Shown here: positions 31,001 through 62,845 of the stretch, piece by piece | Position numbering within the stretch: position 1 is the first letter of the stretch | Layout: every line of letters starts with the position of its first letter | Origin: Cycas panzhihuaensis | Lineage: Eukaryota > Plantae > Cycadophyta | Length of the DNA: 64,000 bases | Assembly: GCA_023213395.1 (NCBI GenBank) | Contig: CM041465.1 | Coordinates: 227,051,741-227,115,740 of the forward strand | Direction of reading: 5' to 3' | Notes under the pieces: model-generated | Told to the model about the DNA's origin: nothing | Database searches by the model: none | The model's input: only the letters and a program-made list of their open reading frames with translations | Program-made: the position numbers and the translations under genes

Positions 31001-31309
31001 TGGTTTAACTAAGGTGATTAAGTGAAAAGGTATAACTTATTTAAAGTATCACAACCTCAACCAAGTGACACCTCTTAAAAGAGAATAAAAGCCTTGAGGC
31101 CTTGTGTATTCGATTTATCAAGCAATTGCAAAATAGTTAGTCTAATCCAGAAGGATCTTTTGTGGTGGGTTTTTATCCAAAAGGGTTTTCCCGTATAAAT
31201 CCTATGTATTGTATATATATTTTCCATGTGTATTTTTGTTTGCTTGCTATGTATGGTTAAAGATTCTATAGATGGGAATATACCTGTATAATTTCATATT
31301 CCTAAAAAA
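25072..31309 (+). mobile_element. Copia element C1, complete but decayed, inserted in the 3' LTR of X
   Basis: LTRs 25072-25425 and 30955-~31309; PBS TGGTATTAGAGC at 25426. Gag FNGNNFSEWK (ATG 26941), zinc knuckle ~27650, protease WVLDYGA ~27805, LWHNHLGHLN, INT IRSDNGKEY, then RT and RH to ~30840. Confidence 0.92.
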
Positions 31310-34300: not shown

Positions 34301-35780
34301 GATACTTTTAAAGTGTATTCAAGGTCAAATAAAAGTACATATTTCAAAGATATATTTAAAAGCATATTTTACATCTTTTTGCAACTTGAAAGAGGCTCAT
34401 ATAAAAGTATATTTATTGCTCATTTATTTTTAGTTCATTCATTTATATATTGAAGCTTAATTTAGCTCATTTTTTTCTCATTTAAGAGTTACTTTTGCTT
34501 CATTAGTAAAGCATTTTAAAAGTTGATTTAATGCCATTTTCATTGCACTTAAAAGTTCAAATAAGGTATATTCTATTGGATAATTATAAGCTCACTCAAA
34601 GGCCTTTACTTTCCTTTTATTTTATACTATTTTAAGGTTTACTTATATCATTTTAAAAAGATTATTGATTGTATATATTTGTTTCATTTTAAAAGTAGAA
34701 CATTTATCTTGCATTATTTTATTTAAAAAGAGATATACTTTTCAGCTCATTATCTAGTTACCTGCTTTTATATGTTAAGAAGGAATCTAGTTAGTATCCA
34801 TTTGAAATTTCATTTGAAAAAATGTTTTATTGCATGTCAATCTTAAGTTATTTCCTCATTAGAGGTTAAAAGGATTCTTATTTATTCATTGAGACCATAC
34901 TTTTTAGATTATGTATTAAAATATTTATAATGGCAGTTTATCTAAATGACATTACAACTCCCATATTTGATAGAACTAATTTTCATATTTAGACTAAAGT
35001 AATGAAATTATATTTTATTACAAATGATCTTTGAAAGTTTGTAAAAGATGGTTACAATGATGTAGGTGTTAATACTACCTTAGAAGATAAATAAGTTTTT
35101 AAAGAAAATATGAGAAAAGATAATGAGGCTTTAGCTTTAATTTTTTATACATTAGATGACACCACATTCTCTAGCGTAAGTAAGACAACCACATCTAAAA
35201 ATACATGGGAAACCTTGGAATTAGTTTATGAGGGAGACACTATAGAACTAGAAGAAACTAATTATATTGATGATATTTTACATGTGGAATAGATATTAGA
35301 ACATGATTACATTATTGAATTAGCTAATGTTGTGTGTACCATTAATGATACCAACCAATTGATGATCACATTGTTGAATTTGATAATTATATGTATATAT
35401 ATATCATTAACCCAATTGGCTCTAACAAATTAAAATATGAAGACAAAGATCTTAATGTAGCCACACCTACTCAAGTCAACCTCATCCTACTAAGATTAGC
35501 TTGGAAGCCACTTGAACCATACATTATTAAAGAGGACTACATTGCAAGGATAATAATATATGATGGTGATAAAGCAAAGGAATAAGCACTTGATCTCTCT
35601 CTTAAAGTTTTCTTAAAGTACAAGTACCACAAATTAAAAGAAAAGTTTGAAGATATATGTAATAAACATTATGGGGGAGAATGTTGGATTAATGTTCATT
35701 ACATTTATTTATTTGTGAAAATGTCTTGGGACCATATGAGCTGCCTCCATACATCACTTGGATAAGGTAATATTATTTGA
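29154..35780 (+). repeat. Arm A of the large inverted duplication (partner 48908-55593)
   Basis: Colinear reverse-complement match; ORF pairs 30081/54472, 31350/53173, 31675/52833, 34151/50239 and 35110/49400. Confidence 0.95.
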
Positions 35781-38660
35781 CTCCACTAGATTGAAGACTT
35801 CTAAGCAAGTTTTTATAATCAGGGACATGTAAACATGACTGGATCAAAAATGCCCAAGTGATGTATTGGGTCTTAAAGTCTTTATCAATTGCCTGTTTGA
35901 TTGGTCGAAGGAGATTTATTATCTCATGAGCTCATCCCTTTTACATTTTTAATTTGTTCATTTTCAAAATAAGATGAATAAATCTAAATCTGACTTTGTA
36001 TCAAAGTTCTTTCTAAGAACTTCTAGGACCTTCCAAGCTGTATCATGTTCCTCTTCATTTATCAAGTTGTGCAAGGAGTGATCAATGACCAACAAAATTC
36101 CTACATGAATCTTTTCATCATCTATCCCCCATTGTAGTTTAGCTACAGTATCTGTAGGAGTTGTTAGGGCAGATCCACTAGAAGCAGTTGTTATAGCCAT
36201 TGCTGGTATGCTGGATGTGGGCTGCAGTGGGCTCTCCAAAGGCCTTCACACTTTGTAGCATTTTTAATTACAATGTACCATATATCCTAATTTTCTTTGC
36301 CTTTCAATATGTAGTTAACATTTTGCTTGAATTGAGATGACATGGTGATGATGAAGAAGTAGAAGAGATGATAGAAATATGTGCCACTGACACATGTGGC
36401 TAGTACACCTCGCACAGTAGGGATGTAGAAATGATTGTTATGATGAGAAACAAAAAATGATTAACTATTTTTCAATAATTATATAAAAAATGAATATAAG
36501 TAATGATGCAAGAATGAGGCCTAATATAGAGCTAGCAAAGAGTGGTGATGTGTCATACCACTAACCTCTCACTTATGTCCAAATGTAGGTGAGGTTTCAA
36601 TGCCTAAGGCTTCTAGTATACAATTAGGACCTTTACTTGTGATACCCACACCTCTGCTTGGTGATGAAATCCAAGTCACAGTGGAGCCTAGGTACTCCTA
36701 GTCCTCACCCAGTTCACCAATGAGCAGCTATATACCTCCTCCAAAGAGTCAAATGGTACTACATATCCCACGAATATGATAGATATTGGACTGGGTTAAT
36801 TTTAATTTTGCATTAAGGTTTTCAATTTTCCCAGGTGGTTATCAGGATTATCCTTGATTGGAGGCTATAAGTATGGCTAACCTATCCTTCCATCACTATT
36901 CCAGTTAAGACCAGACCCTGTATGAAACTCACACCTCCCTTAGGGCCTCGACTTCAACTAACCTTGGTCTATTTCAACCAAGGTGAGTGTGCACATAAGT
37001 CAAGAACTGGCGATATAGATCGTATGGATGAGATTCATTTTAGGAATAGTGTAAGATGTTTCTGTATAATTGAAAACTAAAATAGAAACTTGCCAAATGT
37101 GCTTGCTTGCTTTTCGTGCTTGCTTTGTTATTATTGCTACTTTTGTGATGCTTTGTTCTTGTTATTGCTTTTGTGATGCTTTATTGTTGTTGTTGCTTTT
37201 GTGATGCTTTATGCTATGTGTGTAAATAGAAAAGCATGCTAGATTTAGTAGGGGAACCAGATGTTGCTTCTGATCCAAGGTTTCCCTTGCTTTAGTACAA
37301 TATTTCCAAATATGATTTTGGAAGTTTTAATATAAAAGCTACAATGGGCTAAAAATCAAATCAACTTGTCGCTAAAATGATGATTCTCCTAAATCTATAT
37401 GCATGTTATTTTGCCCTATTTTGTGATTTTTTCACAAAATTTATAAATAATGGTAAATGGGCAAATTTTTAAAAATTACAAATATGAAGGCCTAAATGAT
37501 GAAATTTGAATTTATGACAAAAGGAAAAAGTGTTCATAATGTCATTTTTGATAGATTTGTGAAGTCATATTTCAGAAAAGGCACAAAGCATTTTCTGCCT
37601 GAAAAAATAACAAAGTAAAATCATGTCAGATCAACTATCTCAGAATCTGAACTTCAATATGTCAAAAGTTATATTTTGACATGTACATTAACTTTCCCTT
37701 CTGCGCCATCTACAAAATCTACCAAAAAATTACATGAAATGCCCTTGCAAGGTCCTTTGTGGGGTCGAGTAGGCAAAATCAGTAACCGTGAGAAAACTGC
37801 ATAAATCTCACTAACCAATGGATGAAATTTGATGAGATGTTTCTTAAACTAATCTTAAGACATAAATCTACCAGATCCCTTAATAAAACTTTCAGATCTT
37901 CAGCTTATAATTAAAGGATTTCATTAAGAAAAGTGCTTTAAATCACTTATCCATAAAATTTACCCTTTTGTCATAGCCAAAACTCACTGTTTCAGGCTGA
38001 ATCTGAAGTTTCTCCAGAAGACAAACATGATCCTATAGTCAAGAAAACCTTGCATTCCAAATTTCATCAAATCCTGAGATGGTCAATTTTTTATGAAATT
38101 TTGGGTCTTTACTGCTTCTGAGACTGTTTTGGCAGCTGAACGGCTTCAAAAACCTATATTCTTTACCTCTGAATTTCTACACACATGGACAAAGTAGCAA
38201 CATGAAAATACTATAATTTTAATCTCTCAAAATGTTAAAAAATAATGAATGCACTCTCAATACTTCACATTGAAGGTGAAGGAGAGGCAAAATGACTCTA
38301 TGCAAGTGGAATGGAGTGAATAGATCCTCTTCTAGTTCTGATACCACATGAAGGAAGGATGGATCTAGGAGATAAAGCACTCACATGCATATAATTGCAA
38401 TGGAGAATGAAAAAGAAGATGAAACAAGATATGAGAGCAAGCTTGGAGGTGAGAATGAATAATAACTCCCTCCTTGAGGTTTCACATTTTATTATTGAGG
38501 GTGAGCATTAGGGTTATGATTTTCTTGCCTAATGACATGAACCTGAAATTACATCTAAATGCACATAAAGTATATTTCATTAAGAGACTAATGTTAATAA
38601 TATATCCTAAGCTCACATAATTAATCTACACAAATGACCTTGATACATTAACCTCTTTCA
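35781..38660 (-). mobile_element. Copia element D, 5' part only (LTR, ~2-kb leader, start of gag), cut at the duplication breakpoint
   Basis: LTR 38349-38660 (TGAAAG...CCTTCA on minus); PBS TGGTATCAGAAC at 38335-38346; UBN2-like gag TAWKVLEVLRKNF (ORF 35964-36239). Confidence 0.75.
37118..37213. repeat. 28-bp tandem repeat, ~3 copies, in the leader of D
   Basis: TTTTGTGATGCTTT recurs at 28-bp spacing from 37141. Confidence 0.8.
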
Positions 38661-41600
38661 CTATCAATATGAATAGTCTGATAGAGGTGAAGCCTTATTA
38701 AGAGATGATTAACCATACAAGATTATGGGTTGTGGAAAGGTCAAAGTAAGGTTCAAGAATGGAAGGACTAAAACTATGCCTAATGTTAATCATATTTCAT
38801 TTTTATGATGATTTGTTATCTCTTAGATAATTAGGTGATGTATGGAAGTGGTCTTCAATAAAGAAAGTTATATAATTATTTAAGGAGATTTGGTGTTGGG
38901 GAAGGGGTCTAATTTGAAATGCTCTATAAGATTAATACAAGCACTATATATGCTAAGAATAGTAGTCCAATTATTATAGAATGTAGCAACGGTACAGGTA
39001 GGATCTAGATGTTGCTGACCATGAATAATATATTATGGCATGTCTTTAGAATTGATTTCTCCTTTGATTTTGATTTATGAGCATTGTGCTTATGGAAACT
39101 AGAATCATGGAAGGTTTTTCTCTATTGCAAAAAGGGTAAAATGGATTCTATAGTTGATTCATAGTGATATGTTTAGATTGGTTAATCTCCCCTATTAAGG
39201 TGGGTCTGGGTATTTTGTCACTTTTATACATAATTACTTTCTTAGGAAAAAATATAAGGTTTTTAGTAGATTCAAGGAGTTTAAAGCCTTGGTGGAGAAT
39301 GAAATGGATAGGAAGATCAAGATTCTAAGATTTAATAATGGAGGTGAGTTTTTCTCAAATGATTTTGAGTAGTTCCATGAGTACTATGGAATAATAAGGT
39401 AGAAATCAACTCCCCATAGGTGAAGAGAATGAACAAGTTGACAAGGTGGTTCAACCTTAAAAGACTTCCACCTTGAGGAGATCACTTAGCTTAACAAGTA
39501 TACTCTTAAAAACTCTTGTCATGCTTCTTTTATTCTAGTTACTATAAATGATGATCCAATAATTATTCAAGAGGTTCTTGTATCAAAAGAGAGTAAGTTA
39601 TAGAAGAAGGCCATAGGAGATGAAGACTTAGATAAGAATAAAATATAAGACCTAGTGAGGTTTCCAAATGGCATAAAGCCTACTTAGAATAAATGTCTCT
39701 TTGAGAAAAAGTTTAGGTAGATGATACAGTGGAAAAGTATAAGGCTCTATTGGAGGCAAAAGGCTATTCCTAAGTAAAGAGAATAGATTTTGGTGAGGTA
39801 TTTTTTGATATTGGAAATTTATATTTAATTAGATTTTTATTGGTTGTAACAATTACTTATGATCTTGAGTTGGAGTAAATGGATATGAAGACAATATTTC
39901 TTAATGGTGACATTGAAGAAAAGAATTATGTATTCTAGCCTAAAGGCTTTAGAGTTATAAGCAAGGTGAATTTGTTATATAAATTGATGAAGTTATTATA
40001 TGGCTTGAAGAAGCCACCAAGTATGTGGTACCAAAAATTTAATACACATATGTTGGGGGTTGGGTTTTAGTACAACAAAGCTAATTATTGTATTTATTAC
40101 AAATAAGTTAATGATCCTTTGACTATCTTGGTTTTATATATTAATGACATTTTATTAATAGGTAATAGTAAAAGAATAATTAATTTTATGGAAGCCCGAT
40201 TGGCATCTCATTTTGAGATGAAGGATCTTGGTACATCATACTTTATTTTAGGCATTGAAATTAAGAGAGATAAACATAATAGAAAACTTTAGCTTAACTA
40301 AAGGAGATACAATGAATTGATACTATAGAGGTTTAGGTTATAACACTACAAGCTTATCAATATGCTTATCCATGTTAGAACTAATCTTTTAGTCAAGTAG
40401 TACCTAAATACTTATTAAGTTGTTGAGGGCATGTCTTTTTTCCTCTATATAAGTGTAGTTAGAAGTATGATATATGTTATGGTCTATACTCAACTAGACA
40501 TTACCCATGCAATAGGAGTTATGAGTAGATATATGTCAAATCTAAGCAAACAACATTAGGTTACAACAAAGAGAGTTTTTAGGTATCTATGATTAATATC
40601 ATATTATAAAATTTGCCACTAGGTACATTTCGCACAAAATAAAATAGTTGATCTAAAAGGTTTTATTGATGCTAATTGGGCTAGAAATTTTGATACTAAA
40701 TCTACAAGTGGCTATGTATTTAACTTATTTGGTAGTATAATTAGTTAAATGAGTAAGTGATAGCTAGTTATGTCACTCTCAAGCATAGAAGTTGAGTATA
40801 TGGCAACTACTCATGCATACAAGGAAGTTGTTTAGCTATAGAGATTACGTATAGATATTGGCTTTACACATAATGCAATGAGAATAGATTGTGATAGTCA
40901 AAATATAATTTATTTAGTAAAGAACCCTATATTTCATGCTTAGTCAAAGCATATTAATATGTAGTTGTATTTTTTAGAGACATGGTAGAAAGTCATAAAG
41001 TGGATTTGTAAAAGTATGATACACTAGTGAATGCAACAAACTTATTGACCAAGGTAATTAGAAGTTTACTTGGTGTAATAAAGTAATGGGTATTTATGAT
41101 TTTGGCATTCATTAGTTTATGTATGCAAGTTCTTTACAAAGTATTCAATAAGTAGGAGTATGTTAGATATGTTGAACACTTTGCAAGGTGTTACATAGGT
41201 ATTGGTGTTATACCTGAACTCCTTTTTGAGGTTTGTAGGGCCAAGAAGGCCCCCTGGCTGAGGGATATATGGGGCTAGTAGCCCCTCTAAATGGGGATTT
41301 ATAGGAAAGAGCTTCTAAGAAAAGTTTTTTGTGGTCTTATGGGGTATTTCTAGCACATGGTTTTATACCCATTCTATTGTAATGTTTTTAATCAATTTCA
41401 TATAAAATTATGTCGTCATATACTTCTATATTGGTATATATGAAAAGGTTTGATATGATTGTGAGATGGTGTTTATTGTATATTCTTTAGTAAATTGCTA
41501 AATTTAATAAAAGTGGTCTATCATTAGACTTGTATCTCTAGTTATTCTTATTGATATGCTTGGAATATCTATTTGTTTGATATTTTCATTGTTTAAGTTT

Positions 41601-41698
41601 TATTTCATATAACTCCTCTATTTTATATTTTTTAATAGATGTTGGCACCTCATACACTAAAAATTATTATTAATTTTCTCAAATCATCACTCTCAACA
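38661..41698 (+). mobile_element. Copia element E (Tork-like), 3' part: decayed PR-INT-RT-RH and 3' LTR
   Basis: KIMGCGKVKV; KIKILRFNNGGEF; YGLKKPPSMWY; EMKDLG; KSTSGYVF. PPT AAGTAGGAG at 41150; LTR 41161-41698 (TG...CA). Confidence 0.85.
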
Positions 41699-44600
41699 TT
41701 AATGTGTAATAGATTTTCCACATCCAACTTATCAACTCCATGTAAACATGTCATGTATATATATACCTAACCTATGTGTTGTTTATATGATGAAATTTAG
41801 TGGAAATATTCATTATATCTATGTAATATGTGTCATTAAGACTTATTTCTCCATGTGACTATTAAAAAATGAGAGAACACTAAAAAATATTACTCTAATA
41901 TTTTTTTAAATAAAAAAATGATAAGTAATAAAGCATGAAATAGGCTTAATGCATTCATAATCAATGTGATTGGGCTAATATCGAAAGGAGCTACTAGAAT
42001 CCAAATCATATGAATTTCACTTTAATTACAAGGTGACTCTAGTAATTTAAAAAGATATTTTAATACCTCTATTTTTTATTTTGTTCTGCATTTTCATTGC
42101 AACTTATCCTTGATGATTTGGTGATGAAATTTAAGTGATTTGGTAGATCTTAATCAAGTGTCTTTGTTACAATTGATACACACAATACTTAATTTCTTTA
42201 TCATTATTATTTCTCTCTGATTAGCCATCTCTTTCTTGGGTTCTTCTCATCAATTCATGTTATATCGATGATCTTGTTTGTCCTTAACCATAATGCACAC
42301 AGTTCTTGATTTCTTTACCATTAATTTTCATCCTACTTGGATATCTCTTACTTGGGTTCTTCTCATCGACTCATGCTATATATGTGACATCACCTATCCT
42401 TAATCATAATTATGCTATGGTCTATAAATTCAATGGCACTTGTTTTCTTTGTACTTGGCCCATCTCTTATGATCTTATGATGCTTGGATTTGCAGTCGAG
42501 CATATACTAACCCATAATCTATCAAAATCTCATCCAACCACCTATATCTTAACTTTTTAATGTTGTCTTATACAATGGTTATGTACTTATGCCCTACTAT
42601 GTTTGTCTTAAATCCATACTCTATCTACCCATAAATGTTTGTATCTAAATGATCTCCACCCTCTTTAAAGCCTACTAAAGACCAAAGAGTTACATAGATC
42701 ATTATTCAAAGTGAATGTTGACTATTTATATCAACTTTATTATGAGGAAGGGCAGGCTTATATACAGAGGGCAAAGATCACTTGGGTAAAGATGGCCATG
42801 GGTAGATAGAGCATGGACCTAAGATAGCCATAACAAGACATAAGAATATAGTCATTGTGTGAGATGACATAAAAAATTGAGTCATATATAACTAGATGAG
42901 AGTTTGGTAAAATGTGGATTGGTTTAGGTTGGACTACAAACCTAAGCATCATAGGGTCTTGACAGAAGGGTTGAGTGTAAAGAAAATAAGCACCATTAAG
43001 TTCTCAAATTTAGGAAAGTAATTAAGAGAACCATTGTTATTATTTTTGTTTTGTGTTTGAGGTTATCTCTTCCTATCATTATTATTATTATGATTAAGAA
43101 AGGGATTTTTATAGATGGATAAGTTTAAATTACTTTTAGACTGAGTTTGAGCACAAGCTTAAAACTTCATCTTATGTAAAGCCCAAACCCATCACTCAAT
43201 ACAAGTTGTTAGACACATTCACTTCAACCCTCCACAACTTAGAATATAAATTAGGTGTCTCCCCTCAAATTAATATTGGAAAGAATACATAAGAAGAGGT
43301 ATCACCTAAAACCATTACACTTGTTAAGAAATGCATCCCTCCATCTAAAGGTTATACTAAATTGTGGTGTTCTCTACATGGAATAAAGGGTCATTTTGGT
43401 GATGGGTTTTGGACTTTGTGTAAGATAAAGTTTTAAACTCATATTCAAACTCATTCTAAATCTAATTGAGACCAACCCATCTATAAAAATCCTTTCTTGA
43501 CCACAATAATAACACTAATAGGAAGAGACAACCTAAACCATAAAATAAAAGTAATAACAATGGTTCTCCTAATTAATCTCCTAAATCTAAGAACTCAATT
43601 CATTTATTTTCTTTGCACTCAACCCTTCTTATGATCTTATGATTCTGAAGTCTATAGTCTAGCCTAATCCAACCTAAACTAGTCTATGGTTTATCAAACT
43701 CTCATCTAATTTCTCAAATCTCAACTTATTAATGTCATCTCACATAATGACTATGTGATTATGCCCTACTATGCCTACCTTAGTTCCATGTTTTATTTAC
43801 CTATTGACATATACACCTAAATGATCTTTGCCCTCTATAAATGAACTACCTCATACTCATAATAAAGTCTATGCAAATAATTGGTAGTCACTTTAAATTA
43901 TGATCTTTATGGCTCTTTAACCATTAGTAGGATTTGATCTTCTCTTTTACCCTACATAATGGTCTAATTTTGCATGTCTCTACTATTTTTACATTCTCAT
44001 CTAGTGACTTTATAAACTGCTACTATAAACCATATTTCTCAAATCTAAAATTTCTAATTATCCCCCTTTAGATCCTTCAACTAATCTACTATGGGCTCAT
44101 GAGTTATACATATCTTAGCTTTGATTTGATTTTAGCATTGATATCCCAATAGTATGTTTATAAGTCTACTATTAATTGTTGGTTCTATTTAAGACCTACT
44201 TTTTGGGCATGTTCAACATGCACACTTCATGACTTCCAAGGCCATACTAGCCTGATAGAGAAGGCATGCTTTGTCCATCAATGATGTTTCTTTTCTTTTT
44301 TCTTTTAGAAGTGTTGGTGTCCTCTTAAAGTAGGGATAGCCAGCATGTGTATTCCTGCCATTATGCCTTGTGTGAGGATAATTCTTTATCTATAATATTG
44401 TTTAGATTGAATATTAATTGAGGCCTTTCTTGATGCTATTACATAGTCTCAACTTGCTCTTATGACTCTCATCCTCTTCCTCATAAATCATCTATTTCTT
44501 TAGACATATTGAGGTGAAGAGTTTACCTAGTGTTGAAAGAGGTTGAGTGCTTAAAATCTTCAAAAGTGAGGAGCCAACACTCTTTATATTAAATGTAATC

Positions 44601-44893
44601 ACTCTATGATTTTCAAAATGAAGAATACAAATTAAAGATTATAGGACTCACTTAAGGTGGTGTTGATCCTACTAATGGTGTATGTCTTATGTTAATAAGA
44701 AAATCTTGAAAAGGATGATACACATAATTAATGTACCTACTATATTTAAAGTGTCAACTAATCAGTCACCACTGTGTCAACTAATTAGTTACCACTGACT
44801 ATGTATCAATGCATGCTAATTAACTCGTTGAAATAATAATCAATGTCAAATTAATCATAATTGCCTTAGGAGAAGTGATCTTTGACATCAACA
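41699..44893 (+). mobile_element. Element F: very decayed Copia-like internal region and 3' LTR (mirror at 59280-62472, -)
   Basis: Zinc-knuckle-like LWCSLHGIKGHF near 43361. PPT-like CACTTAAGGTGG at 44649-44660. 233-bp LTR TGTTGAT...ATCAACA at 44661-44893. Confidence 0.55.
42667..43935. repeat. Old inverted repeat: arms 42667-43195 and 43399-43935, ~200-bp spacer; third partial direct copy at ~42410-42666
   Basis: The reverse complement aligns by eye along the whole arm, e.g. GAAGGGTTGAGTG/CACTCAACCCTTC and GAGAACCATTGTTATTA/TAATAACAATGGTTCTC. Confidence 0.85.
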
Positions 44894-46412
44894 CCAACTT
44901 TCCAACTTAATGAAAGTTTCCTTTTTAATAGAAAGTAAGTCACCAAGCCCAATGTTGACCTTTATTGTCAAACTTTTTGTGTAGGTTTTTCTTGTTGAAT
45001 TTTTATTATTGATTTTTCCTTATCTAGCTTTTTCTAGTTGTCTTTTCTTTATCAAGCTTTTCGTTGTTAAACTTTTCTTGTCAACCTTTTTTTGTGTTGA
45101 ATTTATACTTCATTGGTTTTTTTGATAACTCCCAAACTTAATACTAGATCCAAATATTACAAAAAAAGGGGACTATTTTTTTTTTATTTTATACTTTTTT
45201 TTTTAAACATTACTCCCTGTATAGTTTAATTTGACTTATATTGATTTAGTTAGGAAGTGATTCACCATCAATGGTCTTTAATGAAACTGAACCATTTGGC
45301 CATATGTTGTCTATAATATAAGGGCCATTCTAATGTGTCTTTAACTTTCCTAGTTTGTCTTTAAATTTACTATCAAATACCAACATTAAGTCACCCACTT
45401 AGAATGCATTAACTTTAAGTTACTTGTCATGTCAATTCTTTTGGTAATGTTTAGTAACTTTATGATGGATTTTGGTAATAATATAATTTTATCAAGCTTC
45501 AATAACTATTATAGTCTTTTATCTAGGTCCTTCAGGCCTCTCCATTAATCTAGTATGCCTCATAGAGGCTTGGGATAATAAACTTAGTGGGCATGACTAT
45601 TTCAAAATTATATACTAATTGAAATGGTATTTGTTCTTTGGGTTTCATATATGATGTCTTATATATTAGGTTTAATACTTGTTACCCTATATTAAAGTAT
45701 GCATTTGGAGCACGCAAGCCAATTATAGCCAAGGTAAGTTTATTTTATGTATGTTTTATTATTATTTTATTTTTGAATTGTGTCAGTTGAGGCAGGCTCC
45801 TACCCACCTCCTAAACTATATATTTCAAGGGTAAAGTCCCTGATGTTTATCAACACCACCAGAATTTGAAGTTTGTTAATGATTTTCAAAATGGGTTGAA
45901 TATTTTTCTTGCTCTGCTCTATTCTCAAGATCTCTCATTTGGTATTAGAGCACCTTGAGTGAGGTTTGGGACTTAAAGCATACCTATATAAATGTAATTT
46001 ATATTATTTAATAAGTAAGATCATTTATATAGTTTTTTAAATTAAATTTATCAAAATACATTATTTTGCATCTTTATTTAATGCTAGCATACCTTTATTT
46101 GCCATACAAATTGTTGGCTACTCCCATGATCTACAAACTAACATTTTTAATAGATATCTTAATCATATTCAGCCCAAGTATGATTTGGAGTAGGTTTGTT
46201 AAGATTTTAGAAGAATTTTTTAATTTTTCTCAATGTTTTTCTCAAGTTTCAGGTTGAATTAGCTTACCTAGACTTTAATGGGTTGTTGCATATCAACAAA
46301 TAATCAAAACTATTGCATATGATTGATCACTACATTTATCTTTGAGTCCACTTTATAATAGAGAAGATGACAAGTAATTTTATTAATTGGTTAAAGAAAA
46401 ATCTCTCCTAAA

Positions 46413-46579
46413 AGTCAAGTCACTCTATGAATTTGTGAAAAACTTGTCGCCCATCTATATTTTCACTTTTAAAATTCAATTTTCATTATTTTTAAGAGAG
46501 TCAAGTCACTCTATGAATTTGTGAAAAACTTGTCACTTGTCTATATTTTCACTTTTTTAATTCAATTTTCATTATTTTT
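46413..46579. repeat. 86-bp tandem duplication in the X leader (mirror ~57597-57763)
   Basis: AGTCAAGTCACTCTATGAATTTGTGAAAAACTTGTC at 46413 and 46499. Confidence 0.9.
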
Positions 46580-46897
46580 CTCTCAATTTTTTTTACAAAT
46601 TAGGGTGCTTAGATCGTGCACCTGAGATAGTGTGATTTTTAGTGCTCCACTTGATCGATTAGATCGATTGTTTGACCTCTGTTTGCCCTCATCGACTTGC
46701 TTAGCTTCAACTACTTCATTCTCAGACTGTGGGCCTCTATTCATGATGAAAATTGATAGGCACTAAGTTAAATATTAGATCTATCCACCCCTAAAATTTC
46801 ATGGCGATTCGTGGTCTCTATAAATAGAACAAGCTTCTTGAATCCACCTTATGCATGCATGCAGAATGTGTAGATTTTATATTTAAAAAATTATTTG

Positions 46898-46899
<2 letters not shown>

Positions 46900-46978
<79 letters not shown>

Positions 46979-47031
46979 CATATATATATATATATGTATG
47001 TATGTGTATACATATATATATATATATATAC

Positions 47032-47094
<63 letters not shown>

Positions 47095-47259
47095 TACATA
47101 TATATGTACATATATACACATATATGTACATATATACACATATATGTACATATATACATATATATGTACATATATATATATATATATATACATATATACA
47201 TATATATATATATACATATACATATATATATATATATACATATATACATATATATATAC

Positions 47260-47303
<44 letters not shown>
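46900..47303. repeat. Compound (TA)n/(TACA) microsatellite, ~400 bp
   Basis: Direct inspection. Confidence 0.98.
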
Positions 47304-47307
<4 letters not shown>

Positions 47308-48907
47308 TATAGTTTAAATTTAATTTAATTTGATTATATAAATATTTAAATCCAGTTGTTAGCTCCCCAGTTATCCCTAGTAGGTGGCTTTATTCTATTC
47401 CACAAGACCCTAGTTTAGTAAAAAAGGGGCTCAATTTTGAAATTCTATAAGCTATTTTTAATTAATTTGGTTGTTAAAAGATTTAAGTCTTTTTAATATT
47501 TTTTTAAATCCATTGGCCCCCTTGTGACCTTAGTTGTTGGTCTTATTAAGGTCCCATATGACCTTAGTTTTTAAATCTGAGGGCAGACTTAAAAACCCAT
47601 TGGGGCATATTTCATAATTTTGGATTTTAAACAATTTTATAATTTTTAATAATTTTTCAAGTCTATACCCCCCTAATTTAGTTTTTTACCTTAAAGAAGT
47701 CTTCTCACCATTTTGGCTATAACTTTTGATTTAAGAGTCTATTTTTCAAATGGTTGGATTAATTGGAAAGATAATTTAATGATCTATATATTAAAGCTAC
47801 TTATATTATGATTTGAAGTTATTTTGTAGGAATTTAAGGCTAGTAAATTTAGCCCTTCTATTTGATTTAAGTTTGAGCATTTTTCAACATTTTTGAGCTA
47901 TTTTATTACTTCATTTAAGCATATTTGTATGTTATTGAGTTACTAATCCATCTTTGACTATTTTCACTTATTTTATAGAGGCTCACACATATTTTTAATA
48001 AGTTTTTAGTCAATTTTGGCCTCTTGAAAGAAAACAAGACCTTTGGATGCTTATCTTACAAACTAATACTTTCTAAACCTTAAATATTTTAAAGTTGTTA
48101 TTTTAGTTTATAACTCATTCACTTTATGTTAAAGCTCATATCAAACCTAGTTTACTCATTTAAGGGTTAACGTGCTTTATTTTAAAGGCATATTTCAAGT
48201 ACATTCAAGGTTATCTTCTTACATCTAGAAAGGGATAATATAAAAGTGTATTTGTTGCTCATTTATTTTTAGTTTATTCATCTATATATTGAAACTCATA
48301 ATAGAGTTATTTTACTCATCATTAATCATTTTATCTCTTTATTAAAGTTTATTTTTAAAATATCAACTAAGATTCCTTTATTGCATCTAAAAGTTCATTT
48401 AGAGTGTATCCTATTACATGTTTATAAGCTTATTCAAAGGCTATCTTATTTCCTTTAATTACATACTATTTTAAAGCTTATTTGAATTATTTTTAAAAAC
48501 TTACTTGTTTCATATATTAATTTTATTTAAAGAAGATATATTTCATTTTATTGTCAAGTTATTTTTTATTTTATGTTAAAAGGATTCTTACTTCATTAAT
48601 AAGACCACACATTTTTCTCTAGATTATGTATTAAAGTGTTTATAATGGTAACAAATCTTAGTGATATATGTATGAAGAATGTAATGAGGATAGAGCAGAG
48701 CAGGTGCAATAGTATTCAAGCTATGTTCAAAACCATATTCAAATCCATTATCAATACATTTTATACATTGTAAACAAATTTCACATAGATTGGTAATATT
48801 GAAGAACATTGAGGATATTAAGCCCCAAAAGACATATTCGAGAGGTGGGTGGGAGCCTACCTCAATCTCTAAATTTAAAATATAATAAAATAATAAACAA
48901 CTTAAAA

Positions 48908-51391
48908 TCAAATAATATTACCTTATCCAAGTGATATATGGAGGCAGCTCATATGGTCCCAAGACATTTGCACAAATAAATAAATGTAATGAACATTAAT
49001 CCAACATTCTCCCCCATAATGTTTATCACATATATCTTCAAACTTTTCTTTTAATTTGTGGTACTTGTACTTTTAGAAAACTTTAAGAGAGAGATCAAGT
49101 GCTTATTCCTTTACTTTATCACCATCATATATTATTATCCTTATAATGTAGTCCTCTTTATTAATGTATGGTTCAAGTGGCTTCTAAGCTAATCTTAGTA
49201 GGATGAGGTTGACTTGAGTAGGTGTGGCTACATTAAGATCTTTGTCTTTATATTTTAATTTGTTAGAGCCAATTGGATTAATGATATATATATATATATA
49301 TATAATTATCAAATTCAACAATGTGATTATTAATTAGTTGGCATCATTAATGGTACATACAACATTAGCTAATTTAATAATGTAATCATGTTATAATATC
49401 TATTCCACATGTAAAATACCATCAATATAATTAGTTTCTTCTAGTTCTATAGTGTCTCCCCCATAAACTAATTCCAAGGTTTCCCATGTATTTTTAGATG
49501 TGGTTGTCTTACTTACGCTAGAGAATGTGGTGTCATCTAATGCATAAAAAATTAAAGCTAAAGCCTCATTATCTTTTCTCATATTTTCTTTAAAAAGTTA
49601 TTTATCTTCTAAGGTAGTATTAACACCTACATAATTGTAACCATATTTTACAAACTTTCAAAGACCATTTATAATAAAATATGATTTCATTACTTTAGTC
49701 TAAATTTGAAAATTAGTTCTATCAAATATGGGAGTTGTAATATCATCTAGATAAACTGCCATTATAAATACTTTAATACATAATCTAAAAAGTATGGTCT
49801 TAATGAATAAATAAGAATCCTTTTAACCTCTAATGAGGAAATAACTTGAGATTGACATACAATAAAACTTTTTTTCAAATGAAATTTCAAATGGATACTA
49901 ACAAGATTCCTTCTTAACACATAAAAGTAGGTAACTAAATAATGAGCTGAAAAGCATATCTCTTTTTAAATAAAATAATACAAGATAAATGTTCTACTTT
50001 TGAAATGAAACAAATATATACAACCAATAATCTTTTTAAAATGATATAAGTAAACATTAAAATAGTATAAAATAAAAGGAAAGTAAAGGCCTTTGAGTGA
50101 GCTTATAATTATCCAATAGAATGTACCTTATTTGAACTCTTAAGTGCAATGAAAATGGCCTTAAATCAACTTTAAAAATGCTTTGCTAATGAAGCAAAAG
50201 TAACTCTTAAATGAGAAAAAAATGAGCTAAATTGAGCTTCAATATATAAATGAATGAACTGAAAATAAATGAGCAATAAATATGCTTTTATATGAGCCTA
50301 TTTCAAGTTGTAAAAAGATGTAAAGTATGCTTTTAAATATATCTTTGAAATATGCACTTTTATTTGACCTTGAATGCACTTTAAAAGTAAATTGGCTTAA
50401 AAAATAAGTGAAATAGGCTTGAAAATAGTTTAAACTTAAAGTAAATGAACTATAAAATGAAACAACAAATTTAAAAATAAAGTTATTAAGAGTTAGAGAG
50501 CACCGATTTGAAAATTTAACTTTCAAAGCCTCCCTCTTCTTTAAGAGGCTTAAATATGACTAAAAACTATAAAATATCAATTGTAAGCTCATAAAATCAA
50601 GTAAAAATAATCAAATATAGATTAGTAATCTAATAATATATAAATATACCAAGATTGAATAAAAAATTAGTTCAAAATGGCTAAAAAATGATCAAACTAG
50701 GGTCAACTAGGAGAGCTAACTTTACTAGACTCAAAACCCTATAAAATAGCTTCAAATCTTATTAAAAACCACTTTAGTATGTAGATATTCAAAATGCATT
50801 TCCAATGGATCCAGTCATTCAAAAAATATACTCCTAGATGAAATGTTATAGTGAAAACACTGAAAGACCTCTTTTTAGCAATCAAATGAAAAAAGGAGGA
50901 GGGGGGGGGGGGGTTTAAGTCCCTTTGAGCTAAGGCCCTTGGTTACCTAAAGGGATAATATGACCTCCCACTAAGGTCCAAATGGGGCTAGCAGATTTGA
51001 AATATTATAGAATATAATTAAACCCTCTTAAAAACTAAAATTATAAAAAATAACTAATAAAATTTTGAAATCTACCCCTTAATATAAAAAAAAAAAAGGT
51101 CACATGGGAACTCAACATGACTAAAAGCTAATGGAGAAGGGGGCTAATGCCTAAACCACATGTCCAAACTTGAAATTTTATCTATTTTAATTAAATTAAA
51201 ATCAAACTTTAGAAAAAATATATAAATTATCAAATGATTTTCCCAGACATTAACGGGCAACCTGCGCAGGAGAAAAATTTAATTTAAAGACGATCTAAAA
51301 ATGGTCAAAAAGATCGAATCTAACACAAACAAGGGTGCAACAATCTAAAATAAGAAATATTTTAGAAATATATATTCATATATTAATAACT

Positions 51392-51461
<70 letters not shown>

Positions 51462-54400
51462 TAACTTATTAAAAAAGAGCTATAGTTGAAGTAAAATTTA
51501 CCTAGAGGTTATGGTCTTCATGTAGCACTCAGGATTCACAATGGAGTATGCACATGACTATACATAGGTGGTAACAACATAGGAAGTAGCCACTCTATAT
51601 TAGAAGATGGGGACCAATCCATAAAATAGACAAATTATGAGTGCAAATCATTGCTTACTAGATATCAGTGAATAGGGTCATGATGATAGTAATGGGGATA
51701 ACCACTGAGACGAAATGAAAGTGCTAGATATATGCTACTTGAAACTGCCTATGATGCTCTAATAGGCTCCTTAGATTTACCTTCACATAGACTAGATCTT
51801 ATAGACCCACATCAAATATAGCCATAGAAGATTATAACATTCCATGAGAATGAACCATTGAATTATTAATTAGAACACTGACAAGAACCCCAACATAAGA
51901 GCAGAGTGCTAATGGGGAAGATTTGCCATCAAGCATGGTACCAATGGAGAATTCTCACCAATGGACATAGGGACACCAATGAATAGGAGCAACCTGAACT
52001 TGAATAGATGATTCAACAATTAATAAAAATATCAAAACCAACAAATTTAACATTGATAGATTTGTGAGGAATAGAGAGGATACTATGATTTCCAGGAGTA
52101 AGATCTCCTTTCAAAGGAGATGAAATTTCAAACTAATTTTTTCACTGGGAACATAAGGCTGTCAGGAATCCAATGAGAGATCATATGCTTGGCTTTCATT
52201 GGATGAATAATGAGCTAGAAGCTAGAAATAAAGAGATTAGTAAAATAATGAAAAACATTTTAAAATAAATATATATTATTAAAAATGGAATGCTAGGTGT
52301 ATATTCAGAACAACCCATTCAATGCTGCACCGATTTGTTAATATAAGACCAACAAATATTCAAACTTTGTCATAATACTTCTGTAAGGTTTTGTGAGCTC
52401 TGTTACCAAATGAAGAATGCAATGAGGACAGAGTGGAGCAAGTGCAATAGTATTCAAGCCATGTTCAAAACCATATTCAAATCCATTATCAATCTATTTT
52501 TTATATTGTTAACAAATTTTATATAGATTGCTAGTGTTAAAGAACACTAGGGATATTAGGGCCTAAAATATATATTCGGGAGGTAAGCAAGAGCCTACCT
52601 CAATATCCAAATTTAAAATATAATAAAATAATAAACAACTTAAAATAAAATAACATTATCTTATCCAAGTGACAACTGTGGGAGCCTTACATGGTCCCAA
52701 GATATTTGCACAAATAAATAAATGTAATGAACATTAATCCAATAAAGTATACCTATATTTGATAGAACAAACTTTTAACTTTGGAGAAATTTAATAAAAT
52801 CATATTTTATTATTAATAATCTTTAGAAATTTATGAATGATGGTTATAATGAAGATGAACAAAACTTTAAAGAAAATGTGAAAAGAGACAACGAAGCCTT
52901 AGCTTTAATATTTTATGCATTAGGTGACCACACATTCTCTAGAATAAGTAAGATAACCACATCAAAGAATGCATGGGATATTTTAGAATTGCTTTATGAA
53001 GGAGCCAATACAAAACTAAAAGAAAATAAATATATTGATGATGTTTTATATGTGGGACAAATATTAGAGTAAGATAATAATGATATGTTTGATAATGTTA
53101 TATATACCATTGATGACTCCAACGAAGTTGATGATCACTCCAAGATAAAAGATAAAGAAGATAAAAATCCTAATGAAGCTAGACCTACTCAAGTTTAGCA
53201 ACCACATGTCTTATATTCTTAAAGAGTCTATCATTATTAAGGCATCAATAAGGGATGGTGACATGGAATTGGTCTACTACAAAATAAAAGAACAAGTGAC
53301 ATATCTCTTTCCTAAAGTTTTTCTAAAGTATAAGTTCCACAAATTCAAAAAGCAACTTGGAATTTCATGTAATAAACATTATGAGGGAGAATATTAGGTT
53401 TAATGTTCATTACTCTATATTAAAGTCTACATTAGGAGTTTTTAGGAATATGAAATTATATAGGTATATTCCCATCTATAGAATCTTTAACCATACATAG
53501 CAAGCAAACAAAAATACACATAGAAAATATGTATACAATACATAGGATTTATATGGGAAAACCCTTTTGGATAAAAATCCACCACAAAAGATCCTTCTGG
53601 ATCAGATTAATTATTTTGCAATTGCTTGATACATTGAATATACAAGGCTTCAAGGTTTTTATCCTCTTCTAAGAGGTGTCACCTGGTTGAGGTTGTGATA
53701 CTCTAAATAAGTTATACCTTTTCACTTAATCACCTTAGTTAAACCACATTAATATTAACATAGTGGCTTAATAATCAACTGTCATGTTAACATCCCCCCT
53801 TAATGTGCATGTGGAAAGTCTGCCAACTACAATAGCTATGTTATCATAAAGGTTGGGACTATCCTACAATTTCTTTATCCTTGTCGATACACCCCCCCCT
53901 TAAGGATAACATTAGTGAGTCCTAATTTGGTATGCACCTTCGTGAAATGATCTTCAATGAGTGGCTTGATGAACATGCCTACAAGCTAGAATTCACTCAA
54001 ATAATAGTCAACCGATAGCTTACCTGACTTTATCTTTTCACAGATGTAGTGGTGCTAAATCTCGATATGCTTCATATGCACATGAAACTCTAGATTCTTT
54101 GATAGGTGAATGTTACTCTGATTATCAACAAAGATAACTAGATGTCCATTAGAAACTCTAAGAAACTCTAGGAGACCTTGTAACCATACCGTTTCCTTTA
54201 TACCAGCATTAAGTCCTTAATATTCTACCTCTATAGAAGATAATACTAATGTCTATTTCTTCTTTAACTACCATGAAATAAATCCATTACCAATACCAAA
54301 TAGGTATCCAGTAGTGGACTTTCGATCATTGGAGTCTTCTCCCTTATCAATATTCGTATAGTTATACAACCTTATCTCTTTACCTCAATAGTACTCAAGA

Positions 54401-55593
54401 CCAAGATTGATTGTCCCCTTTAAATATTTTAGAATCTACTTTGCTATAATAAAATGAGACTCCTGGGGATTCTACATGTAGTGGGAAACTAATCCAACAT
54501 CATATGCAACATCTAGTCTAGTATGAGTCAAGTAGATCAGATTCCCTAATGACTGGCGATACTTCATTCCATCTATAAAGGGCTTGGTCATATCCTTTTG
54601 CAACCTTACACCCTTTACATATGGTGTTACAATAGGTTTATAATTTTGCATCCTAAACTTATCCGATAGGTTTTTCATATATTCTGACTACAACAATGCA
54701 ATCTGATCATCCATCTGCCTGATCTGAATGACCAAGAAATAATGAAGTCTCCTGAGGTCTGTCATGTTAAATGAAGCTCCTAAATTAGACTTGACTTCAG
54801 CTATAACCTTTCCGTAGTTATCACCGATGATGAAATCACCTATATATACCATACAAGTAATTATTGAAGTCCCTTTTCTTTTCATATACACGTTTAGGTT
54901 AAGTTCTAAAAACTCGAAACCTTTAGCTTTCAACTTAGCATTCATATTTTTATACCAAGCATGGGGTGCTTGTTTCAGGCCATAAATTGATTTCTTTAAT
55001 TGGAAAACAAGATACTCTTAGCCATCCTTAATGAATCCCAAAGGCTGTGATATGTAAATCTCCTCCTTTAGATCTCTATTAAGTAATGCAGACTTGATAT
55101 CCATCTACTGTAACTCCCAACCATAAGTAGCTACTAAGGAAATGTACAAGTAGACCATTGTCATTCTAGAGACTAGTGCAAATGTCTTTTTATAGTCAAT
55201 TCCTTACTTTTTCTTTAATCCTTGAATCAAAATATTGGTGAGGTTTAGTTATCCATACCATTGTCCACATCTCCATTGAAGTGAAACTTTATCTTATAGA
55301 CCCACTTGCATCTAGTAAGGTTCTTCATTGGAGGGAGTGGAACCAAATCCCACATATTATTCTTTAGTAGAGAACTATACTCTTCCTCCATCATAACTCT
55401 CTAATATGGATCTCATTTTACCTCATCAAATAAATTAGGATCATTAGAGTCGTTGATGTCTACCAACATAGTTCAATTAGCATGTTGACTTCTAGTTATT
55501 TTACCATCATTTAGGGTTTACATTGCCATACTAGAATCTTTAATAGTCTTCCTTGCCCATAAAGGTATAGAAGAACCTGTTGTTAGAGGTACT
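48908..55593 (-). repeat. Arm A' (inverted copy of 29154-35780)
   Basis: See arm A. Spot check: 4 mismatches in 120 bp, all transitions. Confidence 0.95.
51395..51458. repeat. (TA)n microsatellite in the Y leader
   Basis: Direct inspection. Confidence 0.95.
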
Positions 55594-58509
55594 CCTTGCC
55601 CATAAAGTTGTTTATTATTTTATTATATTTTAAATTTAGAGATTGAGGCAAGCTCCCACCCACCTCCCGAATATGTATTTTAGGGCTTAATATCCCCGGT
55701 GTTCTTCAACATTACCAATCTATGTGAAATTTGTTTACAATGTATAAAATGGATTGATAATGGATTTGAATATGGTTTTGAACATAGCTTGAATACTATT
55801 GCACCTATTCTCCTCTATCCTCATTACGTTCTTCATACTTATATTACTAAGATTTATTACCATTATAAACACTTTAATACATAATCCAAAGAAAAATGTG
55901 TGGTCTTATTAATGAAGTAAGAATCCTTTTAACATAAAATAAAAAATAATTTAACAATAAAATGAAATATATCTTCTTTAAATAAAATCACTGTATGAAA
56001 TAAGTAAGCTTTTAAAAATAATTCAAATAAGCTCTAAAATAGTATGCAATTAAAGGAAATAAGATAGCCTTTAGATGAGCTTATAAACATGCAATAGAAT
56101 ACACTCTAAATGAACTTTTAGATGCAATAAAGGAATCTTAGTTGATATTTTAAAAATAAACTTTAATAAAGAGATAAAATAATTAATGATGAGTAAAATA
56201 ACTCTATTATGAGTTTCAATATATAGATGAATAAACTAAAAATAAATGAGCAACAAATATACTTTTATATGATCCCTTTCTAGATGCAAGAAGATAACCT
56301 TGAATGTACTTGAATTATGCCTTTAAAATGAAGCGCGTTAACCCTTAAATGAGTAAAATAGGCTTGATATGAGCTTTAACATAAAGTGAATGAGTTATAA
56401 ACTAAAATAACAACTTTAAAATATTTAAGGTTTAGAAAGTATTAGTTTGTAGGATAAGCATCCAAAGGTCTTATTTTCTTTCAAGAGGCCAAAATTAACT
56501 AAAAACCTATTAAAAATATGTGTGAGCCTCTATAAAATAAGTGAAAATAGTCAAAGATGGATTAGTAACTCAATAACATACAAATATGCTTAAATGAAGT
56601 AATAAAATAGCTCAAAAATGTTGAAAAATGCTCAAACTTAAATCAAATAGAAGGGCTAAATTTACTAGCCTTAAACTCCTACAAAATAACTTCAAATCAT
56701 AATATAAGTAGCTTTAATATATAGATCATTAAATTATCTTTCCAATTAATCCAACCATTTAAAAAGTAGACTCCTAGATCAAAAGTTATAGCCAAAATGG
56801 TGAGAAGACCTCTTTAAGGCAAAAAACTAAATTAGGGGGGTACAGACTTGAAAATTTATTAAAAATTATAAAATTGTTTAAAATCCAAAATTATGAAATA
56901 TGCCCTAATGGGTTTTCAAATCTGCCCTCATATTTAAAAACTGAGGTCATATGGGACCTTAATAAGACCAACAACTAAGGTCATAGGGGGGCTAATGGAT
57001 TTGAAAAAAATATTAAAAAGACTTAAATCTTTTAACAACCAAATTAATTAAAAATAGCTTATAGAATTTCAAAATTGAGCCCCTTTTTTACTAAACTAGG
57101 GTCTCATGGGATAGAATAAAGCCACCTGCTAGGGATAACTGGGGAGCTAACAACTGGATTTAAATATTTATACAATCAAATTAAATTAAATTTAAACTAT
57201 ACTATATATATATATATATATATATATAGATATATATATAGATATAGATATATATAGATATAAATATATAGATATAAATCAAATATTTTTTTAAATGTAA
57301 AACCTACACATTCTGCATGCATGCATAAGGTGGATTTGAGAAGCTTGTTATGTTTATAGAGACCACGAATTGCCATGAAATTTTAGGGGTGGATAGATCT
57401 AATATTTAACTTAGTGCCTATCAATTTTCATCATGAATAGAGACCCACAGTCTGAGAATGAAGTAGTTGAAGCTAAGCAAGTCGATGAGGGTAAACAGAG
57501 GTCAAACAATCGATCTAATCGATCAAGTGGAGCACTAAAAATCACACTATCTCAGGTGCACGATCTAGGAACCCTAATTTGTAAAAAACTTTGAGAGAAA
57601 AATAATGAAAATTGAATTAAAAAAGTGAAAATATAGATGAGTGACAAGTTTTTCACAAATTCGTAGAGTGACTTGACTCTCTTAAAAATAATGAAAATTG
57701 AATTTAAAAAGTGAAAATATAGATGGGCGATAAGCTTTTCACAAATTCATAGAGTGACTTGTCTTTTAGGAGAGATTTCTCTTTAACCAATTAATAAAAT
57801 TACTTGTCATCTTCTCTATTATAAAGTGGACTCAAAGATAAATGTAGTGATCAATCAAATGCAATAGTTTTGATTATTTGTTGATATGTAACAATCCACT
57901 AAAGTCTAGGTAAGCTAACTCAACCTAAAACTTGAGAAAAACATTGAGAAAAATTAAAAAATTCTTCTAAAATCTTAACAAACCTACTCCAAATCATACT
58001 TGGACTGAATATAATTAAGATATCTATTAAAAAATGTTAGTTTGTAGATCGTGGGAGTAGCCAACAATTTGTATGGCAAACAAAGGTATGCCAGTGTTAA
58101 ATAAAGATGCAAAACATTGTATTTTGATAAATTTAATTAAAAAAGCTATATAAATGATCTTACTTATTAAATAATATAAATTACATTTATATAGGTATGT
58201 TTTAAGTCCCAAACCTCACTCAAGGCACTCTAATACCAAATGAGAGATCTTGAGGATAGAGCAGAGCAAGAAAAATATTCAACCCATTTTGAAAATCATT
58301 AACAAACTTCAAATTTTGGTGGTGTTGATAAACATCAGGGACTTTACCCTTAAAATATATAGTTTAGGAGGTGGGCAGGAGCCTACCTCACACAATTCGA
58401 AAATAAAATAATAATAAAACATACATAAAATAAACTTACCTTGGCTATAGTTGGCTTGCGTGCTCCAAATGCATACTTTAATATAGGGTAATGAGTATTA
58501 AACCTAACA

Positions 58510-59279
58510 TATAAGACATCATATACGAAACCCAAAGGACAAATACCATTTCAATTAGTATATAATTTTGAAATAGTCATGCCCACTAAGTTTATTATCC
58601 CAAGCCTCTATGAGGCATACTAGTTTAATGGAGAGGCCTAAAGGACCTAGATAAAAGACTATAATAGTTATTGAAGTTTGATAAAATTATATTATTACCA
58701 AAATCCATCATAAAGTTACTAAACATTGCCAAAAGAATTGACATGACAAGTAACTTAAAGTTAATGCATTCTAAGTGGGTGACTTAATGTTGGTATTTGA
58801 TAGTAAATTTAAAGACAAACTAGGAAAGTTAAAGACACATTAGAATGGCCCTTATATTATAGACAACATATGGCCAAATGGTTCAATTTCATTAAAGACC
58901 ATTGATGGTGAATCACTTCCTAACTAAAACAATATAAGTCAAATTAAACTATACAAGGAGTAATGTTTTTAAAAAAAAGTATTAAAAAAAAAAAAAATAG
59001 TCCCCTTTTTTTGTAATATTTGGATCTAGTATTAAGTTTGGGAGTTATCAAAAAATCCAATGAAGTATAAATTCAACACAAAAAAAGGTTGACAAGAAAA
59101 GTTTGACAAAGAAAAGCTTGATAAAGAAAAGACAACTAGAAAAAGCTAGATAAGGAAAAATCAATAATAAAAATTCAACAAGAAAAACCTACACAAAAAG
59201 TTTGACAATAAAGGTCAACATTGGGCTTGGTGACTTACTTTCTATTAAAAAGGAAACTTTCATTAAGTTGGAAAGTTGG
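58510..59279 (+). pseudogene. Host Gypsy integrase C-terminus and 3' UTR, piece 3 (inverted copy at 44894-45663)
   Basis: YKTSYTKPKGQIPFQLVY..EIVMP resumes after TSD TATAA, followed by a GKLKTH..PYI tail and an A-rich repeat UTR. Confidence 0.8.
59081..59220 (+). repeat. Degenerate ~14-bp A-rich tandem array in the host Gypsy 3' UTR (mirror ~44953-45092)
   Basis: About ten units resembling AAAAGTTTGACAAG. Confidence 0.7.
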
Positions 59280-62200: not shown

Positions 62201-62845
62201 ATCACATTGATTATGAATGCATTAAGCCTATTTCATGCTTTATTATTTGTTATTTTTTTATTTTAAAAAATATTAGAGTAATATTTTTTAGTGTTCTCTC
62301 ATTTTTTAATAGTCACGTGGAGAAATAAGTCTTAATGACACATATTACATAGATATAATGAATATTTCCACCAAATTTCATCATATAAACAACACATAGG
62401 TTAGGTATATATATACATGACATGTTTACATGGAGTTGATAAGTTGGATGTGGAAAATCTATTACACATTAATGTTGAGAGTGATGATTTGAGAAAATTA
62501 ATAATAATTTTTAGTGTATGAGGTGCCAACATCTATTAAAAAATATAAAATAGAGTTATATGAAATAAAACTTAAACAATGAAAATATTAAACAAATAGA
62601 TATTCCAAGCATATCAATAAGAACAACTAGAGATACAAGTCTAATGATATACCACTTTTATTAAATTTAGCAATTTACTAAAGAATATACAATAAACACC
62701 ATCTCACAATCATATCAAACCTTTTCATATATACTAATATAGAAGTATATGACGACATAATTTTATATGAAATTGATTAAGAACATTACAATAGAATGGG
62801 TATAAAACCATGTGTTAGAAATACCCCATAAGACCACCAAAAACT

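Follow-up and report, generated by a model that had tools for sequence, protein, structure and literature searches.

Within a 64,000-nucleotide stretch of the genome of Cycas panzhihuaensis (Cycadophyta; assembly GCA_023213395.1, contig CM041465.1, positions 227,051,741 to 227,115,740 of the forward strand), a nest of old long terminal repeat (LTR) retrotransposons is interrupted by a large inverted copy of itself. This whole stretch is referred to below as the window, and all coordinates are counted from its first base. An initial annotation made from the letters alone had proposed the segment order A-[Z-B-A']-B', in which the bracketed segments form the insert, and self-BLAST and global alignment (MAFFT) of the window place each segment within a few bases of that map:

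29154-35780, plus strand: arm A, the left half of the native copy, carrying the 3' part of the element Copia C, part of LTR element X and most of LTR element Y (to about base 99 of the Y 3' LTR); leftward it is continuous with the rest of Copia C.
35781-41322, plus strand: Z, the first 5.5 kb of the insert, with a degraded Copia element (Copia E); unique within the window.
41323-48903, plus strand: arm B, the inverted copy of B', beginning where Copia G has its empty site and where the Copia E 3' LTR putatively starts (TGTGG, 41330).
48904-48907, no strand assigned: AAAA (TTTT on the native strand), found in the inner copy only and absent from the native path at 35780/55605.
48908-55593, plus strand: arm A', the inverted copy of A, ending within the pol of Copia C, with an RVT_2 domain on the minus strand at 54691-55017.
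55550-55564, plus strand: filler template, 43 nt upstream of the filler and within A'.
55594-55604, plus strand: 11-nt filler CCTTGCCCATA at the right junction, between A' and B'.
55605-62845, plus strand: arm B', the right half of the native copy, with the remainder of the Y 3' LTR, the remainder of X and other old repeats.

Self-BLAST returned two long inverted matches that interleave, with 29150-35780 being the reverse complement of 55597-48908 and 41322-48903 the reverse complement of 62846-55605. The homology of A' ends at 55593, which corresponds to native position 29154, and that of B and B' ends at 41323 and 62845, respectively. Arms B and A' are contiguous, with only the AAAA lying between them. 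As originally claimed, B+A' is a contiguous reverse complement of A+B': the two aligned colinearly from end to end, 509 substitutions being present among 13,852 aligned bases. The insert consists of Z-B-A' and the filler (35781-55604; 19,824 bp), and the copied tract amounts to 14.3 kb verified against the native sequence or 19.8 kb in total with Z. It leaves two interleaved inverted repeats, A/A' of 6.6 kb and B/B' of 7.2-7.6 kb, in agreement with the initial annotation, which gave two repeats of about 7 kb and a duplication of the whole stack of transposable elements (TEs).

The direction of the event can be read from two LTR elements, each of which is bounded by a target-site duplication (TSD):

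24838-58509, minus strand: LTR element X, with TSD TATAA at 24833-24837 and 58510-58514, closing only when A is joined to B'.
32003-55835, plus strand: LTR element Y, with TSD TACTT at 31998-32002 and 55836-55840; its 3' LTR is interrupted by the insert at 35780/55605.

Copia C (25086-31301) and Y both lie within X. The 5' LTR of Y starts at 32003 and is followed by a tRNA-Met-type primer-binding site, TGGTATCAGAG, and its 3' LTR is whole in the inner copy (48673-49006) yet lies in two pieces in the flanking copy (35682-35780 and 55605-55835). Both the split LTR and the two TSDs had been pointed out in the initial annotation, and each was located as described. Since the TSDs of X and Y close only across the insert, A-B' is the native path and Z-B-A' with its filler is the insert. 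The same direction follows from Copia C. A Pfam search of about 30 stop-free pieces, which matched Copia gag, pre-integrase and RVT_2 pieces only, placed the native gag_pre-integrase at 28084-28269 and RVT_2 from 29499; an integrase-like piece lies at 28420-28551. The inner copy stops within pol, between the integrase-like piece and RVT_2, whereas the native copy runs on normally at 29154 into the Copia C gag/pre-integrase and is colinear there with a second Copia; therefore A-B' is original. Together, these observations support a single insertion of the inverted copy into a formerly contiguous native path. X and Y are themselves related Copia-derived elements of ~4 kb (31334-31995 versus 34960-35702), Y having entered X in opposite orientation; a Retrotran_gag_2 piece is present at 31678-31968 on the minus strand.

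Two novel junctions are visible, 35780/35781 and 55593/55605; whether 41322/41323 constitutes a third hinges on the sequence beyond the window, and the empty site of Copia G speaks against it. Between 35780 and 55605, the native path lacks the TTTT that is present in the inner copy, and because the 5' LTR of Y carries the same TTTT, it is ancestral. The target flanks read ...TTTGA and AAGTTG..., with four bases lost and none duplicated, and a search for a TSD at 35780/55605 found none, just as had been reported at the outset. The left junction joins TTTGA to CTCCAC. Neither 35781 nor 55604 exhibits terminal inverted repeats, LTRs, poly-A or Helitron (5'-TC...CTRR-3') ends, and no terminal repeats are shared by the two ends of the insert. 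These results bear directly upon transposon-mediated movement, whether as a giant composite self-insertion, alternative transposition, Helitron/Pack-type capture or a retro-copy. Its attraction is that the two copies have the same outer limits, which is what would be seen had an element landed in a second copy of its own sequence. However, one of these limits falls within a Copia C pol that continues normally in the native copy, and the loss of bases, the lack of a TSD and the missing termini are all at odds with transposition, to which we assign almost no credence.

The right junction carries a scar of another kind. An exact 15-mer at 55550-55564 recurs at 55593-55607, where it comprises the preceding T, the filler and the AAG that follows, such that the junction is flanked by microhomologies of 1 nt (T, 55593) and 3 nt (AAG, 55605-55607). 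Two transitions separate the native counterpart (29183-29197) from the 15-mer and most plausibly reflect subsequent decay. A direct-repeat motif flanked by microhomology is the signature of synthesis-dependent microhomology-mediated end joining (SD-MMEJ) and of polymerase-theta joining (PMC7407515). The filler is left unexplained by an isochromatid staggered-nick 'inversion' of a 4-bp core, in which P-alpha-rc(alpha-TTTT-beta)-beta-Q (P and Q being the outer flanks and rc the reverse complement) would arise from filled-in overhangs alpha of 6.6 kb and beta of at least 7.2 kb. Such a model, described in PMC7584159, would account without any deletion for the presence of TTTT in the middle only, but it requires single strands of 6.6 kb and 7-13 kb to be unwound and filled in, which is physically unattractive, and the length of unwinding counts against the model even at much smaller sizes (PMC7584159). 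We therefore regard it as highly improbable.

The same scars argue against an assembly artefact, in which an alternative-haplotype contig or chimeric reads would have been set in reverse within the allelic region. The arms differ by 3.7%, which could be allelic in a very heterozygous plant. On the other hand, the window contains no N, both junctions are non-homologous and lie at the same native point only 4 nt apart, and one of them carries a templated 11-nt filler, whereas misjoins induced by repeats switch within homology and leave no such scars. An artefact is accordingly very unlikely in our estimation.

Segment Z is the part of the insert for which self-BLAST found no counterpart within the window, and two further Copia elements determine how it can be interpreted:

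Copia E, in Z, plus strand: degraded, with integrase at ~39235-39366, reverse transcriptase (RT) at 39972-40289, an RNase H region at 40665-40954 and a run resembling a polypurine tract (PPT) at 41303-41324.
62846-64000, minus strand: Copia G, with a 334-bp 3' LTR at 62846-63179 (TG...CA), the PPT complement at 63180-63190 and then an RT/RNase H region.

The homology between B and B' stops exactly at the terminus of the Copia G LTR, and the inner copy has the uninterrupted empty site. Copia G is an insertion into the native copy that postdates the duplication and masks any further homology. An LTR insertion leaves its flanks undeleted, so the native sequence should resume past Copia G as the complement of the end of Z. 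The domains of Copia E occur in order in Z and end about 350 nt ahead of the purine run and the TG start at 41330 in B. Judging from the Copia G empty site and this domain order, Z likely belongs to the same copy and is continuous with B, and a mirror of Z likely lies past base 64000, outside the window. The initial annotation had based this continuity upon a Copia E LTR spanning the boundary of Z and B, and that support did not hold up: neither BLAST at word size 7 nor Smith-Waterman alignment of 35701-36900 with 40901-42400 detected a second Copia E LTR in the window, the best local score being 68 versus a shuffle maximum of 69. No Pfam annotation was obtained for the first ~3 kb of Z from the stop-free pieces searched. 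Copia E is also ~570 bp shorter than Copia C in the integrase-RT interval (39366-39490), where the colinearity offset shifts from -10815 to -10236.

The lack of a partner for Z in the window and of a Copia E LTR pair to link Z with B would be natural if Z were a separate filler from elsewhere or if the locus were the product of successive rearrangements. Against such a multi-step or three-template origin stand the homology that ends exactly at the Copia G LTR terminus with an empty site in the inner copy, the integrase-RT-RNase H order of Copia E in Z leading into the PPT-like run and TG start in B, and the equal transversion divergence of both arms described below. We consider a multi-step origin quite unlikely. 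Flipping of A/A' or B/B' by recombination was also entertained as a simpler intermediate and was rejected by our own reasoning, as it calls for more junction types and more complex intermediates.

The substitutions between the copies comprise 385 transitions and 124 transversions (p = 0.0367; Kimura two-parameter distance, K2P, 0.038), which falls within the ~3-5% range, mostly transitions with additional indels, that spot checks had originally indicated. Indels of at least 5 nt within the arms range from 5 to 52 nt, plus a single one of 332 nt in an AT-rich satellite. This tract (46873-47352; counterpart 57203-57299) is self-complementary and satellite-like, and B is the copy in which it is longer than in B'. 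A related AT-rich tract (51368-51463; 33285) accounts for the 52-nt difference between A' and A, and these two are the only sizeable indels of the arms. Transversion density is equal in the two halves of the alignment, about 8.5/kb in A and about 9.1/kb in B', and total divergence per 1-kb window varies from 2.5% to 5.6% due to transitions only. No convincing tract of gene conversion between the arms was found, the longest identical run being 280 nt versus an expected maximum of about 192 (95th percentile 258, 99th 307). From the equal transversion density and the absence of conversion tracts, we can conclude that the arms date from one event.

An excess of C-to-T changes at CpA was an early hint of a process akin to repeat-induced point mutation (RIP), which was rejected because the trinucleotide rates match plant methylation contexts. 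Transition rates were 0.28 at CG, 0.39 at CAG, 0.71 at CCG, 0.18 at CTG and 0.15 at CAA, with other contexts at about 0.05, and the transitions in the arms would fit the decay of plant cytosines methylated in CG, CHG and CHH contexts. Derived C-to-T changes are symmetric between the copies (193 versus 192). Just 78 CG sites are left in the 13.8 kb of arms, and the transition load of 58994-62846 is half that of the remainder.

The LTR pairs of X, Y and Copia C have K2P distances of 0.16-0.25, compared with 0.038 for the arms, a comparison that had been suggested as a check upon the duplication. As the arm distance is far below that of the LTR pairs, a finished, old TE nest was duplicated as a block, and by these distances the duplication appears to have about one quarter of the age of the TEs around it. 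An assumed rate of 1.3e-8 per site per year, which is commonly used, would date the event to about 1.5 million years ago, within a span of roughly 1-2 million years. Copia C is nested in the left LTR of X, yet its LTR-pair K2P (0.25) exceeds that of X (0.16). This mismatch probably results from methylation-driven rate heterogeneity, and LTR dating is rough at this locus.

A non-transpositional reading, in which the copy arose during the repair of a break, is well supported. More specifically, we think it probable, with moderate confidence, that a single copy-and-paste event of repair or replication created both inverted junctions and was closed by a theta-type end join. The starting point, which the sequence shows, was a native path P-A-TTTT-B'-(Z')-Q consisting of an old LTR retrotransposon nest, with Z' being the presumed native source of Z. 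A break or stalled fork would have arisen at the TTTT within the 3' LTR of Y. The left 3' end would have re-primed about 13 kb farther along, at the distal limit of Z', using the opposite strand of a sister chromatid or homologue that was still intact. Copying would then have proceeded backward through Z', B', the break site and A, and into the pol of Copia C (native 29154). There, the nascent end may have moved back by 43 nt and copied 11 nt a second time before AAG paired it with the remaining broken end, in the manner of theta-type joining or SD-MMEJ. The predicted outcome is P-A, Z-B-A', filler and B'-Z'-Q in that order, with two adjoining duplicated segments and two inverted junctions. 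The copied tract runs across the break site. The broken duplex itself can therefore not have served as template, which leaves an intact sister or homologue, or an event at a replication fork. We infer that replicative synthesis supplied the copy, that a sister or homologue served as its template and that Z' was included in that template. Break-induced replication mediated by microhomology (MM-BIR) has been described (PMC7407515).

Repair of a double-strand break by long-tract templated synthesis was also the initial proposal for this locus. Its single insertion, its break-repair scars and its independence from transposons are borne out here, while the synthesis itself yields the same sequence as the capture of a fragment. 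In this rival, the 'chromatid' staggered-break model, a sister or homologue would break twice, once at native 29154 and once at the distal limit of Z', freeing a linear fragment of ~19.8 kb. End joining would insert this fragment backward at the TTTT, the site of a third break, without long synthesis. It predicts an identical product, including the 4-nt loss and the theta-type filler at one junction; the chromatid model is established for inverted duplications at Drosophila inversions (PMC7584159), and yeast breaks have been documented to capture linear fragments (PMC1976456). No template-switch mosaics were seen inside the insert. Nevertheless, fragment capture requires two chromatids to break at three points almost at once, all within about 26 kb, as opposed to one lesion and two switches, and the authors of the largest catalogue of such geometry prefer copy-and-paste. 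We judge fragment capture to be unlikely, but it is the main rival of the copy-and-paste event.

Several other considerations weigh against the copy-and-paste event as formulated above. Sequence cannot separate templated synthesis from the capture of an excised fragment, and the entire structure rests on one assembled sequence. Given the symmetry of the C-to-T changes, the copy shows no trace of additional mutagenesis, which would be undetectable in any case at this size. With Z lacking a visible partner, a third template switch or foreign filler is conceivable, and the native end of Z' lies beyond the window, which renders any microhomology at the left junction unreadable.

Elsewhere in the window, positions 1-10325 are occupied by a GC-rich (50-56%) LTR element having 1.9-kb LTRs at 90.8% identity, set within surroundings of roughly 30% GC. 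A weak direct repeat (11891-12294 and 24242-24664; 74% identity) has its two members about 12.4 kb apart, and the region between them exhibits a strongly negative GC skew; the repeat probably represents the two LTRs of a large and old element on the minus strand. Within arm B, 42176-43935 (mirror 60242-61998) is an internal fold-back/tandem structure with tandem units of 116 nt (42176-42410) and a palindrome of 67% identity (42432-42997), and is without known annotation.

Bursts of retrotransposons are given nearly all the credit for the expansion of large plant genomes, whereas a TE nest was doubled here by the repair or replication machinery. Both junctions and the path preceding the event are still readable, and the event can be dated relative to LTR pairs. 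As the documented fillers are mostly <1 kb, the locus provides a natural long-tract case for how far templated repair runs in plants. The inverted repeats of 6.6 kb and 7.6 kb are also candidates for flip-flop inversion and for hairpin small RNAs. The value of the locus is as an example and as the basis of a possible genome-wide count, rather than as a new mechanism. Only tentatively would we extend the argument to long-tract (14-20 kb) replication or repair copy-and-paste as a process that is active in the germline of plants and has occurred repeatedly in this genome. If it does recur, it would represent an unquantified, transposase-independent gain of DNA in large plant genomes, and its multi-kilobase inverted repeats could seed hairpin small interfering RNAs (siRNAs) and later inversions.

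Among known systems, fold-back inversions and palindromic inverted duplications (PMC10622511; PMC3907307) resemble this locus in that an inverted copy is made at a break. Fold-back copies start at or near the break with a short spacer, usually accompanied by a terminal deletion or a dicentric, whereas the copy described here sets in about 13 kb past the break, and the chromosome runs on normally. Fold-back inversion was rejected as an explanation, as the copy begins with Z and the partner of the break-proximal sequence is 13 kb away at 48903/48908. The staggered-break inverted duplications at inversion breakpoints (Ranz 2007 and others; PMC7584159) share the arrangement alpha...rc(alpha), rc(beta)...beta around an inverted core. 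Here, duplications of 6.6 kb and 7-13 kb surround a core of 4 bp, the opposite of the usual proportions.

A further resemblance is found in the filler 'patches' that synthesis-dependent strand annealing (SDSA) leaves in plants, which similarly have no TSD, a small target loss (TTTT in this case), short homologies or filler at their borders and a retained donor; in Cycas, the native copy is unharmed except at the break. Larger filler patches at plant breaks have reportedly been described by Wicker, Buchmann and Keller in 2010 (Genome Res 20:1229). Filler DNA copied by SDSA at plant double-strand breaks is documented and short, with barley indels averaging 492 bp and reaching a maximum of >7 kb (PMC3706897). 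Unlike the barley fillers, the patch in Cycas measures 14.3 kb verified or 19.8 kb in total, and its donor is the broken region itself, reversed.

The rearrangement class to which the locus belongs is already known from cancer and human germline genomes. As in that class, a pair of inverted junctions would link two neighbouring duplicated segments on one chromosome with a low-level copy gain, and a junction (here the right one) carries microhomology and a templated insertion. It differs in being an old germline event within a plant reference sequence, in having a methylated TE nest as its content instead of genes, and in having duplicated segments that abut to within 4 nt, placing the copy inside its own source. 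The locus is thus a new plant example of this known class, with an unusually long tract.

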